A stretch of 64,000 nt of DNA from Lytechinus pictus (GCF_037042905.1 NC_087253.1:9424001-9488000), one strand, 5' to 3'. Positions 49,128 to 54,190 are shown, counted from the first letter of the stretch. Notes: a model not told the origin generated them from the letters alone. Numbers and translations are program-made.

Positions 49128-52100
49128 ATGTTCACACTCGCCTTCTTCTTGGGTAGCTTGCTGTTAATACAGCAGCTACATGAAGTCAAGCACACTTGCA
49201 CAGCCAGCGTTGCATTGTACAACTACAAGGCTCATATTCCTTCTCCGAATGGAAAGAACTTTTATCATCTGAAGTATTTACAAGCCAGTATACATTACTA
49301 CAGCAACTGTGAATCAACATTTAACATTGAGCTCCTCAAATGCGGTGATATACACCCCAACCCTGGGCCGACAAACCAAAACCAAAGTCAACCCAGCACT
49401 CGTACTGTATTTAAATATTCAATTCAAGATTTATATAACCTACGTCAAAGAAATAGCTACAGGACCGTACCGCCAACGACATGGAAAGTGATAAAGGACC
49501 TCGGGATCACACCAAAACCACTACGCAAGCGAGGAAAACGAGCTGGTTCTAGGAAGCATCCTAAATCTTGTCCCAGACCGTACCAGGGGCAAGGCATACC
49601 TGTACTTATCCGACAACGCCTTTTACCTTCACAACGCAAACCTCGCCCAGCATGTTTTACTACAATCACGCCGATGCAACACGACAACGCTGCTCATCAG
49701 AGTCACCATGGCTACGACGTCCCAACCCTGCTACTACTGAACGCCAAATCACTGAGGAATAAGATCGACGAATTGTCAACAATCATTCAGGAATATAAGG
49801 TGGACATAGCAACGATTACCGAAACATGGTTTAGTCCAGAAGAACCCCTTGATATGTTCTCAATACCGGAGTTTTGCTTATATTCAAAACCCAGGGAAGA
49901 TCGATTAGGGGAAGGAGTCGCGCTCTACGCAAAACATCATCTTCAAGCGAGGATAATCGATGTACCTACACCTAAAGGAGTTGAAACTTTATGGATCTAC
50001 ATGAGACCCCAAAGACTTCCAAGGGAAATTAGCGGACTGATACTCTGCGTGATTTACTTCCCTCCAAGGAACCCCAACAAGCAGCAGTATGTTGATCACC
50101 TTCTCTCCACCCTGGACAGTCTTTTGCTTCGCTATCCAGAATCTGGGATCTCGGTAGTAGGTGATTTCAATGATTTAGATATTAATTTCTTACTTGAAAA
50201 TAACAAATTCAAACAAATTGTTACTCAACCAACCCGAGAGGGCAATATTATTGATATGATTGTAACCACTATAGACCCATTGTACCAAGAAACCAAAATA
50301 TTAGCCCCTATTGGCATGAGTGATCATAACTGTATCCTTTGGATACCCAAGGAAAAGGCTCATCGTATTAATCAAGTTAAGAAAAGAATTGGTCGCCCGA
50401 TTCTTGACAGTGGCAAAAGAGCTTTTGGTAGTTGGTTAACTAAGTTTACTTGGGAAGAAATGTATAAAGAAGATGATCCATCTTTGAAATGTCAAATGTT
50501 ATTAGATACTATGATGACTCACTTAGATATTCACATTCCGACAAAAGAGATTCGAATGCATTGTAGAGATAAGCCTTGGATCAATGCGGAAGTCAAAGAT
50601 GTTATACATCAAAGACAGCAAGCTTTCAGTAACAACTCCCAAAGTCTGTGGCGTTATTTAAGAAACAAAGTGATACGCTTAATCAGACAAAGAAAAGTTG
50701 CATATTATAATACCAGAGTTAGAAATTTGAAAACTAGTAATCCAGCAGCATGGTACAAACAGATTCGGATTTTAACCAACACTCACAAAAAACATAGCCC
50801 AATCCATATTCCGAATATTGACCCAAATGATCCTAATCATTATAAAAATATTGCTAATTATATTAATCAGCATTTCTTGAACGTGGCAAGTGATCTACAA
50901 AGTTTAAATAGAAATGAATTACCTGTTTATTTACCATCTCAGAAAACCTGCCCTATTGTACAACCTTACGAAGTATATAAACAATTGAAAACTTTGAACC
51001 AACAAAAATCCGTCCGAATTATTCGTGAGTTCGCCTTGGAATTGTGTTCACCACTAACTGATATCTTGAACAATTCCTTTTACCGGTCTGTTGTACCATG
51101 TCAGTGGAAACGCTCTGAGATTATACCCATTCCTAAATGTTTACCAGTAACAGTGCAGAACTTAAGACCAATAGCATTAACTAGCTATTTTGCAAAAATA
51201 GCAGAGTCGTTCATATGTAAATGGTTATTAGAAGATATATCAGATCACATTGATGTTAACCAATTGGAAATAGACAAGGGCTATCAACAAATCATTACCT
51301 AGTTCGATTGCTTCACCAATTGTATGAAAATGCAGAAAAATACCAATATATATCAACACTCATTTTTACAGACTATTCAAAAGCTTTCGACAGAATAAAT
51401 CACAATATCCTTGCAAAAAAATTACTTAACCTTGAAGTAAGACCGTGTCATATTTCCTGGATTTTGGACTTCCTCGAAAATCGACGACAACGAGTCAAAT
51501 ACCTTGGTCAGTGTCACATGCAGGTGTAGCTCAAGGTACAAAACTTGGGCCTATTCTCTTTCTAATAATGATTAATGATGCATGTATAAAATCTCAAATT
51601 CCATATTTTAAATATGTTGACGATCTCACACTGGTTGAAAGTCGCGTTCAATTACAACCATCCAAACTTCCAAATACGCTTACTGAATTTAACCAATGGT
51701 CTGTTAGCAATAACATGACACTTAATCCATCTAAATGTCAGTGCATGCATATAACTTTCTCTAAAAATATTGTTGATCAAAGTCGTATTTTCATTGGAAA
51801 TGAATGCTTGAGAACAGTGCAAGAAGCTAAAATATTAGGTATAATTGTTCAGTCTAACTTAAAATGGGATAGTCATATTTCACACCTATTACGTCGTAGT
51901 AATAAAAAACTATATATGCTTCGTTGTCTCAAAACGTATAAATTACCACTTTGCGATTTAATAACTGTATATAAGGGTTACATTAGGCCAATTTTGGATT
52001 TTGGAGTACCAGTTTTTAATGGAAACCTAACACAAAACCAAATTTCCTGTTTAGAACGTATTCAGTCAAGAGCATGCAGAATTATGCTAGGTGAAGAATA

Positions 52101-52353
52101 CACTAATTATACTGATGCTTTAGAAGTGTGTTCTTTACAATCTTTATCTGAAAGACGAAAACAATTGTGCATGAACTTTGCTGTATCCCTTGCCAACAGT
52201 CCACTTTGTAACCATTGGCTACCTCTCAACAACGATGTTGATTACTCATTGAGGAGAAGACCTAAATATCGTCAGTTTCGTTGTAAAACCAAACGTTTTC
52301 TAAACAGTCCATTGCCTTACTTTATAAATTTACTAAACGGTAATTTGAAATAA
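49128..52353 (+). pseudogene. LINE polyprotein (leader, 2A-like motif, APE endonuclease, reverse transcriptase) with two frameshifts
   Basis: APE motifs LNAKSL, ITETW, GDFN, PTREGNIID, SDH; RT motifs LRPIAL, DYSKAFD, GVAQGTKLGP, YVDD; frameshifts near 51265 and 51510 link ORFs 49128, 51308 and 51445. Confidence 0.92.
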
Positions 52354-52368
52354 GCTTGTATTGTTCCT

Positions 52369-52584
52369 TAGTCAGGATCTGAATGTTGGTTGCTGGGCGT
52401 TGGGGAGACCCACGGTCGCCGGTCCCACGTGGTACGTTCACAGGAGCCTCGCCCTCCTACTTTTCGCTCTTGTGACAGAGAGCGAGGGGTAGGAGGATTG
52501 GGCGGGTCTGGTGCACGCGCCGTATGGGACGGGTGGCCGTGGGGTTCCGCCGAGGAACGCCTGCCGGCGTTCAGATCTTGACTA
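52369..52584 (+). ncRNA. GC-rich rod-like RNA hairpin in LINE 3' UTR (predicted)
   Basis: Near-continuous pairing over 216 nt; basal 21 bp has 17 Watson-Crick + 4 G-U pairs, apical 16 bp has 13 + 3 G-U. Confidence 0.75.
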
Positions 52585-52950
52585 GTTATTTAGTTACCCG
52601 GTTGATATACACACAAACCTCTGCTGTGCAAGTCGTGTTATGCTAATACATCGCGCCTGATACCAATTTGTTTATTATTATTATTAGTTTATGTGCTTGT
52701 GATGAAAATTTTACAATTTTACCATTTTTAGAACTTTTTAAACTCAAACATATAATTGAATAGGTTTACAGGTGTTATTGTAATGCTTTTAATGCATGTA
52801 TTTCACATTGTAACAACTAAAAGGAAACGATGTTTGGATTTTTATACCAATATTTCACTCATTTTTATCAAAATTTATGTATGTGGTGGAAGACATTTAT
52901 ATCATTTTACAAAACTACGTCATCTTTTATATTTTAAGTAAATGTCTTCA

Positions 52951-53362
52951 GGTTTGAGCAGGACGGATTCCTGGGACGAGCGATCACTCACCCCCGCATA
53001 CTTTTTTTTTTATCCGTATGTTTAATGAGTTCAAGGTGCCAGGGGTGACTGTTGGGTGGGTGAGTTCAGTTGTTTGACTTAGTGTCTTTATGGTTGTTGG
53101 ATGAATGAGGAGCGTGGTATGAATGTGAGTGCGTTTTGTTTTGAAAGTGATTGTTTGTCGGCCCTATTAATGCATAGCTCCGGTGAAGTTAGCTGACCCT
53201 ACAAAGTTCCACCTGACCGATGGATTTGAATAACCAATTTCATTGCTCAGGTTGAATGGTGTTGTGGGATTAGCAATCCTTGGCTGGAGCTGTGCATTGG
53301 ACTTGACTGCTCGCTCGTCCCCAGACACCCTCCTGTCTTTCGTTTTTGTTCCTGCTTAAAAC
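52951..53362 (+). ncRNA. Second structured RNA domain in LINE 3' UTR (closing stems plus two long hairpins, predicted)
   Basis: TTTGAGCAGGA/TCCTGCTTAAA and GGGACGAGCGA/TCGCTCGTCCC close the domain; hairpin 53167-53300 has an 18-bp WC/G-U base and symmetric mismatches; weaker hairpin 52985-53131. Confidence 0.7.
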
Positions 53363-54190
53363 TAAGTTTTTTTATTGTTTGAATTAAGACGTTTATCAAT
53401 AAGCATCCTTCCACCACCACATGTGTTTGTATTTTTTTATTACTTCATCTTTTCCTTTTACTATACATATATTAAGTTGCATTATATTTTCGTCATCATT
53501 TCAAGTTTGATGTTTTTAAATCTGTACACTCTATGTATATATGCCTGTAAATTGTACGCAATTCAGCCTTTTGGCTGCAAAGTGCAATAATTTCAATAAA
53601 ACCTTTTCAATTCAATTCAATTCAAATAGCATACAGATAAAATGAAATAACATTCTAAAGTGGGTACAATGAATAGCATGTTACTGAGTAGCGATAGGGT
53701 TTCTGAAATATATAACCAAACCTCCCCCGATGTGGATTCTTTTTAAGAACACAATGAAACTTAATTTAATTGACAACACACTCACACCGGTAGTAGGCAA
53801 ATTCCTAAAATATATCACTTTTTTTTGCATTTACTACGATTGATATTACCTGCCTTCTTTTCGCTTTAATTGAGTAGTTCTGCAATTGCCGACCAGAAGA
53901 CGATGAAAATCATCACTAATGTGAGGCATATGCCGTTATTTAGCAGAGTAGCCGAAATTATATCGTAATCTATTTCCATCCACCCTGAGTCCAATTGAGT
54001 TTCGAAGGCTAATGCGTGATAAAACTCGTTTTGTGTTTGACTATTAATTATGCAAATAATGCGCAGGTGCTAGTTTGGTTAACTTCGCTGAGATATTGGT
54101 GCTAAGCATTTAAAGCTAAGCAAAATAATGCATAGACGACTAAAGTAATCATTGTGTAAATATTGAAAATGCATCTTGCTAAATGTCTTA

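Follow-up and report, generated by a model that had tools for sequence, protein, structure and literature searches.

Features of the locus

The stretch of DNA analysed here (the window) comprises 64,000 nt of the Lytechinus pictus genome (GCF_037042905.1 NC_087253.1:9424001-9488000), and all positions are counted within it. It contains a LINE of the CR1/L2 type, the ORF2 frame of which is broken between an N-terminal piece and a C-terminal piece (Table 1). Genome-wide, 8544 first-look candidates for related reverse transcriptases (RTs) were found. APE-type non-LTR elements, including CR1-type elements of sea urchins, encode active 2A peptides (PMC3708506). A GC-rich hairpin begins shortly after the ORF2 stop codon, at the 5' end of the 3'UTR, and the next in-frame codon past the intervening spacer is a TAG made up of hairpin positions 1-3. 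This TAG, five codons on, led to the rejection of hairpin-stimulated readthrough of the stop codon.

Copies of the LINE terminate at 53612-53628. The original prediction placed a separate short stem-loop near the 3' end, and this structure is indeed present beside the (CAATT)n tail; from what is known of CR1/L2-type LINEs, it is presumably the RT recognition site. The long hairpin is not the RT recognition site, the candidate for which lies approximately 1 kb further 3'.

Table 1. Coordinates of the LINE, its 3'UTR structures and a control foldback in another copy
Feature	Position	Strand	Basis
ORF2 N-terminal piece (apurinic-type endonuclease, RT start)	49128..51302	+	ORF list; Pfam Exo_endo_phos E 9e-8
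ORF2 C-terminal piece (RT), TAA stop at 52351-52353	51445..52353	+	ORF list; Pfam RVT_1 E 4e-11
Spacer from stop codon to hairpin base, 15 nt	52354..52368	+	Sequence; conserved in other copies
Hairpin rod, 216 nt	52369-52584	+	RNAfold MFE structure
Left (5') arm, pyrimidine- and U-rich	52369..52470	+	MFE structure; fold of majority sequence
Apical loop TGTGAC	52471..52476	+	MFE structure
Right (3') arm, G-rich, source of 12/15 wobble G's	52477..52584	+	Fold
G-quadruplex motif	52486-52506 (hairpin positions 118-138)	+	Regex scan of copies
Rest of 3'UTR, AT-rich, 35% GC, common to ~40 copies	52585..53625	+	Genome search
Second long UTR hairpin	53169..53298	+	UTR fold; comparison with L054
Short terminal stem-loop CAGCC-TTTT-GGCTG, 5-bp stem, UUUU loop	53564..53577	+	Sequence; folded in UTR MFE
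(CAATT)n microsatellite-like 3' tail	53608..53625	+	Sequence; copy ends
Foldback element in copy L020	L020:1619-2281, in UTR at 52598-52606	reverse strand of locus	9-bp target duplication CCGGTTGAT

Structure and composition of the hairpin

For the sense strand of the hairpin, RNAfold predicts one rod of 88 pairs without branches, and the GC-rich rod of about 90 bp that the original prediction had placed 15 nt past the RT stop is thereby borne out; the helices and G-U counts quoted there are also present and correct in the fold. Read 5' to 3', the pairs comprise 29 C-G, 21 G-C, 12 U-A, 11 A-U, 12 U-G and three G-U, or 50 G-C, 23 A-U and 15 G.U in total. Folding of both strands against dinucleotide shuffles, the check proposed with the original prediction, came out in its favour: the minimum free energy (MFE) of the sense strand is -145.4 kcal/mol, compared with -89.3 +/- 5.1 for the shuffles (z -11; none of 200 as good). 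At -105.6 kcal/mol (z -8.3), the antisense strand too forms a strong hairpin, and the strand asymmetry of the rod is thus a matter of degree. For the majority sequence of the family, the two values are -152 (sense) and -99 kcal/mol (antisense), and when the window copy is folded as DNA, its two strands reach -64.7 and -51.2. The rod is unchanged in a fold of the entire 1275-nt UTR.

Much of the pairing depends on wobbles: the longest stack is 8 bp if only Watson-Crick pairs are counted and 22 bp if G.U is allowed, and the outer 21-22 positions are fully paired if G.U is counted. An inverted-repeat search detected terminal arms of 15 nt that are 93% complementary. The hairpin has a G+C content of 63%, compared with 35% in the remaining UTR, and consists of 38% G and 14% A. 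The foldback has TA at both ends, which, being self-palindromic, may just as well belong to the stem.

The right arm carries on the sense strand a canonical G-quadruplex motif of four tracts of at least three G's with loops of 1, 6 and 1 nt. Fourteen of 17 copies retain the motif; the window copy lost it through a G-to-A change at hairpin position 123. Judged from the motif, such a G-quadruplex would compete with hairpin folding. G-quadruplex motifs are also known in the 3'UTRs of L1 elements.

The geometry of the rod, which is long and imperfect in the manner of a pri-miRNA or hpRNA, raises the question of a small-RNA precursor processed by Drosha or Dicer to miRNA-like or siRNA products, or of a decoy for dsRNA pathways, to the benefit of either the LINE or its host. 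Both were proposed in the original prediction, which named an export or localisation element as a further option. The same UTR contains a second multi-hairpin domain, and palindromes of retroelements are known sources of siRNAs, as in the LTRs of maize Sirevirus elements (PMC4728375). However, an Rfam search at permissive thresholds returned just two sub-threshold matches to miRNA families, the better of which (mir-3173) reached 24 bits (E 0.26), whereas the gathering score is 84, so that this search, also proposed with the original prediction, yielded only noise. Cleavage of the rod would detach the ORF from the 3' end required by the RT, to the detriment of the LINE. In three RNA-seq runs, very little transcription was seen, and this from both strands: samples of about 6% of these rRNA-depleted runs contained 21 reads in total, too few for the detection of RNA-DNA differences. 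A role as a precursor or decoy of this kind is quite improbable.

Copies of the hairpin in the genome

The 216-nt hairpin was searched against the 812-Mb assembly, and split matches were merged before copies were counted. Every one of the 23 matches lies in the same LINE context, with the RT frame upstream and the UTR downstream to about 53622. Merging left 20 copies with all or part of the hairpin (the full rod in 17), which represent 19 independent insertions if L007 and L008 are counted once. The rod is present in 19 of 19 independent copies that reach the site, with homologous ORF upstream, homologous UTR downstream and identical junctions. A search with the downstream UTR found about 40 copies, the additional ones being ordinary 5'-truncated copies. 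Neither a site-spanning copy that precisely lacks the rod nor a stand-alone or LINE-independent rod was found in the whole assembly, and a search for the terminal 21-mer with up to three mismatches matched only the known copies and near-chance sequences. The rod therefore belongs to the LINE itself, and insertion of a MITE into the window copy alone does not account for it.

The copies are 85-98% identical to each other. L007 (C25:212451-215664) and L008 (C2:54680130-54683343) have in common their 5' truncation point (51516), their end and private variants, and look like one insertion present twice, either by segmental duplication or as an unplaced haplotig of C2. Two copies, L020 and L057, are 5'-truncated within the rod, and a deletion in L018 begins at its apex. 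The truncated copy L057 (L057:1483-1510, in the region of C2:40831720) begins at hairpin position 199, inside the right arm, with a 13-nt direct duplication (GCGTTCAGATCTT) at its junction, which suggests that the RT may have stalled where the rod has its base, or changed templates there.

Six independent transposable element insertions were found in or at the edge of the 216-bp hairpin (in copies L004, L010/L023, L011, L015/L021, L016/L019 and L017/L022), consisting of MITEs of 161 and 165 bp, a SINE-like element of 558 bp, a 1.1-kb element, and elements with terminal inverted repeats of approximately 2.8 and 3.3 kb. The other ~23 kb of aligned LINE sequence has seven such breaks, a 5.4-fold enrichment in the hairpin (binomial p = 0.005), which is thus a hotspot for later insertions. 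Logan contigs of the species' own sequencing (run X1) stop at 52300 and resume at 52709; as they are broken on both sides of the hairpin, rods of this kind are likely to be under-represented in short-read assemblies.

Strand bias of the arm mismatches

Alignment of the left arm to the reverse complement of the right arm gave 71 Watson-Crick positions, 17 G:T (17-18 across counts), two A:C, 12 transversion mismatches and seven gap positions. The excess of G:T over A:C on the sense strand is significant (binomial p = 0.0007). Two DNA foldbacks served as controls: a DNA-transposon foldback of 1.26 kb elsewhere in the window has 21 G:T and 20 A:C, and the near-perfect 662-bp foldback inserted in L020, with 307 Watson-Crick positions, has four of each. 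When the foldbacks are pooled, 25:24 compares with 18:2 in the rod (Fisher p = 0.0025). The original prediction held that the mismatches are mostly G-T on the sense strand, unlike those of a decaying palindrome, and it is upheld by 17:2 against 21:20 and 4:4.

Mutations private to single copies, most of which arose after insertion, are also symmetric: at Watson-Crick pairs, 14 create G.U and 12 create A.C. Variants shared by at least two copies create G.U in eight cases and A.C in two (p = 0.11 alone), an asymmetry inflated by the presence of 18 Watson-Crick-paired CpG cytosines as opposed to eight CpG guanines. By the time of the family's common ancestor, all 17 wobbles had become fixed. Substitutions were directed by majority-rule bases over 51500-53625, and outside the hairpin, in ORF and UTR, the shared transitions comprise 20 C>T plus A>G and 34 G>A plus T>C. 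A general mutation pressure on the sense strand of the element was rejected because this tendency is opposite to that of the hairpin.

Because both the DNA foldbacks and the private mutations are symmetric, the bias must have arisen during copying through the sense RNA. It is probable, with good though incomplete confidence, that the rod formed as a duplex in the sense transcript of those lineages that kept transposing. By its sense-specific excess of G.U, the rod is not a decaying DNA palindrome. A palindrome of this sort, or a MITE inserted independently and unrelated to RNA, might be suspected from the TA that flanks the foldback on both sides and from the abundance of MITEs and foldbacks in this genome, several of which inserted into copies of the rod itself; but the lack of LINE-independent copies, the occurrence of the rod with the same junctions in every member of the family, and the 17:2 ratio as against the symmetry of DNA foldbacks and post-insertion mutations largely refute it, and it is very improbable.

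Relatives of the LINE and origin of the hairpin

A protein search identified closer relatives at 61-80% amino acid identity, and DNA was compared for two of them, L054 and L055. The closest relative compared at the DNA level is L054, a metagenome contig that is 80% identical in the ORF and partly alignable in the UTR. It has in common with the rod-bearing family the two anchors TTCCTTA and TTATTTAGTTA, between which lies a 42-nt filler without a rod and without structure (z +0.6). Local alignment of this filler to the hairpin scored 13, below the shuffle mean of 14.6. The slot in L054 holds other sequence and is not an empty site. L055 diverges upstream of the stop codon and is therefore uninformative about the rod. 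Within the same genome, no post-stop hairpin was found in 25 loci of related families (52-59% amino acid identity in the RT C-terminus), which have short AT-rich sequence with no strong fold in this position. No L054-like, hairpin-less family was found in this genome, the one match to L054 being the end of the ORF in the family that carries the hairpin.

Since it is absent from L054 and from about 25 more distant LINE families, the rod is lineage-specific, and judged from these sequences it is a recent acquisition and not an ancestral module of the LINE. The original prediction had weighed the possibility of a separate MITE missing from the family consensus: the family-wide presence of the rod speaks for the prediction, and its absence from L054 and other related families speaks against it. 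The flanking TA would fit insertion at a TA in the manner of a MITE. Relatives of the LINE UTR at 70-81% identity exist in the genome (for example, C2:53478944). A repeat family present in 13 places (for example, C2:32559219 and C3:65736175) carries TATTCAGGACCTAAATGTTGG, which matches the first 21 nt of the hairpin at 18 of 21 positions and may be either a chance resemblance or a distant donor of the hairpin terminus.

One way to acquire a rod abruptly is capture of a pre-existing structured RNA, by template switching of the RT or by insertion at the DNA level, with the G.U bias inherited from the source, which could be a host non-coding RNA or spacer helix, the UTR of another retroelement, or a viral or viroid-like rod. 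The island of 63% GC in a UTR of 35% GC, gained abruptly with respect to the sister family, is consistent with such an event, as is the fixation of all 17 wobbles by the time of the common ancestor. However, all 23 matches in the 812-Mb assembly are LINE-linked, with no other copy or source locus, and the rod belongs to no Rfam family. Comparison with the rest of the window and with 27 other LINE loci revealed no similarity beyond chance words of 11-14 nt. The 31-mers of the hairpin were found only in sequencing runs of the same species, and a pattern scan of JGI metagenomes gave a single chance match (L086) in unrelated sequence. Capture is accordingly considered improbable.

The second long hairpin of the UTR has an MFE of -71.0 kcal/mol (antisense, -50.8), and its counterpart in L054 (L054:1340-1520) has an MFE of -88.1 (antisense, -63.0). 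Its arm mismatches comprise eight G:T and two A:C, and it is kept as a hairpin in L054 at 26% sequence divergence. Between the window and L054, 22 of its pairs are identical, 15 were kept by one-sided change, one by compensatory change, and 17 were broken; the one-sided switches between Watson-Crick and G.U are of the C/U type in nine of 15 cases. Because a second hairpin with the same bias is kept in L054, RNA structure appears to matter in this UTR.

Possible contributions of selection for pairing and of RNA editing

On a tree built from flanking sequence, changes that keep or make pairs outnumber those that do not by 11:3 on internal branches, compared with 31:38 on terminal branches (p = 0.038); if L007 and L008 are treated as one insertion, the ratios become 9:1 and 33:40 (p = 0.015). 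CpG homoplasy and an imbalance in the number of target sites confound this test, and the branch-wise evidence of a pairing constraint is modest. Covariation among copies, to which the original prediction had looked, did not materialize: RNAalifold returned a covariation term of 0.04, and in none of the 88 pairs had both partners changed, a result of low power in a family so young (85-98% identity). Thus the claim that the rod is carried by a retrotransposon stands on 19 of 19 copies, and the accompanying claim of selection at the RNA level is weakened by the lack of compensatory pairs and the modest branch evidence. The rod tolerates 12 transversion mismatches and several bulges, and any selection against unpaired positions is therefore not strict. 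The density of shared variants in the hairpin (21/216) is not below that in the rest of the UTR (60/1041). With about 40 copies in the family, the rod gave no obvious advantage in amplification.

The depletion of A.C holds even in comparison with transversion mismatches, and G.U stands at about twice its neutral expectation. This depletion is more directly explained by editing by ADAR than by selection. As a near-perfect foldback in the LINE transcript, the rod would offer ADAR a dsRNA substrate, and it could be a functionless passenger that bears ADAR footprints, A-to-I edits having been read as G by the LINE RT and fixed in daughter copies; over many cycles, the conversion of A-U to G.U and of A.C to G-C would yield a G-rich, A-poor, wobble-rich rod in the absence of selection for pairing. 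ADAR prefers A opposite C or U. The combination of G.U excess and A.C depletion with the persistence of 12 transversion mismatches agrees with such a history, and so does the base content of the hairpin, which is rich in G and poor in A. If the G's of the wobbles are read as former A's, a 5' G precedes two of 17 of them, as opposed to nine of 22 retained paired A's, a trend (p = 0.07) whose direction is not set by an outgroup; avoidance of a 5' G is part of the ADAR motif (PMC2873906). The U's of the wobbles are not enriched in CpG context (7/17 versus 18/49; p = 0.78), which is also in keeping with editing; decay of CpG is therefore not the main source of the wobbles and was set aside as unsupported. 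Hyper-editing of palindromic repeats is widespread in Metazoa and abundant in the purple sea urchin (PMC5625713).

Several observations run counter to editing. Polymorphisms within the hairpin have no excess of A>G (seven A>G and six T>C at Watson-Crick pairs), A>G accounts for only four of 71 singletons, and no copy contains a cluster of A>G changes. Six of the eight shared changes that preserve pairs are between C and T, which is impossible for ADAR, and the C/U-type switches of the second hairpin with respect to L054 point the same way. The neighbour trend falls short of significance. A passenger shaped by editing is possible but rather unlikely; selection and ADAR editing can act together.

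A proposed pairing filter on the sense RNA

The best explanation of these data, which is favoured tentatively, is that of a lineage-specific foldback subject to a pairing filter on the sense RNA and serving as a cis-acting structural module. A 216-nt foldback would have entered a master copy of this LINE, which is of the CR1/L2 type and low in copy number, at a TA in the 3'UTR just past the stop codon, and would since have been propagated by retrotransposition only. The sense transcript is predicted to fold into a stable rod of about 88 bp, and since ribosomes would stop 15 nt short of it, translation would never melt it. In lineages that were still transposing, a filter acting on the sense RNA would have passed changes to G.U and not the mirror-image changes to A.C; we infer that this filter was selection for pairing. 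Because wobbles cap the Watson-Crick stretches at 8 bp, the structure would be far more stable as an RNA rod than as a palindrome in DNA or a hairpin in antisense cDNA, which might lessen both palindrome instability and snap-back during reverse transcription.

The role most likely to be played by the rod, as we infer it, is that of a cis-acting structural module of the LINE RNA, for example one that stabilises the RNA or gives RNP or dsRNA-binding proteins a place to dock; that of a dedicated small-RNA precursor is less likely. A stronger proposal, that the rod is actively maintained as a functional module which shields from or recruits Dicer, ADAR or Microprocessor, or nucleates RNP assembly, its wobbles confining the structure to the sense RNA, is improbable.

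Palindromes copied as DNA decay symmetrically, whereas asymmetric decay is to be expected of those copied via a single RNA strand, provided that this RNA is folded in vivo. This family is a clean and internally controlled example, with 17:2 among fixed differences, 14:12 after insertion, and 21:20 in DNA foldbacks, and the contrast can be used as a test, based only on sequence, of whether the hairpin of a repeat exists as RNA. If the rod was selected, large RNA structures can be newly gained and then retained in the 3'UTR of LINEs over a brief span of evolution; if it was edited, the genome preserves in it a trace of ADAR activity on the retrotransposition intermediates of an invertebrate. With about 20 dated copies and a sister family that lacks the rod, it is a tractable object of study.

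Comparison with known systems

The RTs of stringent-type LINEs of the L2/CR1 group, such as UnaL2 of eel and ZfL2 of zebrafish, recognise a stem-loop at the 3' terminus (reviewed in PMC3747384). Like that stem-loop, the rod is a sense-strand RNA structure in a LINE 3'UTR, and this LINE also resembles the stringent type in having a terminal stem-loop beside a microsatellite-like tail. However, the recognised stem-loops are 10-30 nt long, as opposed to 216 nt, and are located at the extreme 3' end, whereas the rod occupies the 5' end of the UTR and ends at 52584, 1.0 kb from the tail (53608). They are also conserved across related LINE families and partner SINEs, unlike the rod, which is absent from L054 and the 25 related-family loci.

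The rod resembles palindromic MITEs in its terminal inverted repeats, its size, its TA flanks and the nearly full-length extent of its foldback, and in spreading via RNA as the passenger of a retroelement it resembles 'retro-DNAs', which are DNA-transposon sequences mobilised by retrotransposition (PMC11195612). It differs from both in having no stand-alone genomic copies, and from MITEs in that its mismatches are strand-biased, 17:2 as opposed to 21:20 and 4:4 in the foldbacks examined here. No strand-specific RNA cargo of a non-LTR retrotransposon was found described in the literature searched.

Palindromic repeats that are hyper-edited by ADAR, such as the Harbinger palindromes of frog and those of a metazoan survey in which the purple sea urchin was included (PMC5625713), are self-complementary and form intramolecular dsRNA, as would the rod, the G.U richness, A poverty and 5'-neighbour trend of which fit editing; however, every copy of the rod has the changes in its genomic DNA, where only reverse transcription could have fixed such edits. 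The LTR palindromes of maize Sirevirus elements fold into hairpins and attract siRNAs (PMC4728375); like the rod, they are family-specific and are retained in a non-coding region by a retroelement lineage. The Sirevirus palindromes belong to the DNA or cis-regulatory region of a plant LTR element and have been shown to be mapped by siRNAs, whereas the rod belongs to the 3'UTR of a LINE and is known here from its sequence. In terms of these systems, the rod is a structured or captured LINE 3'UTR sequence.
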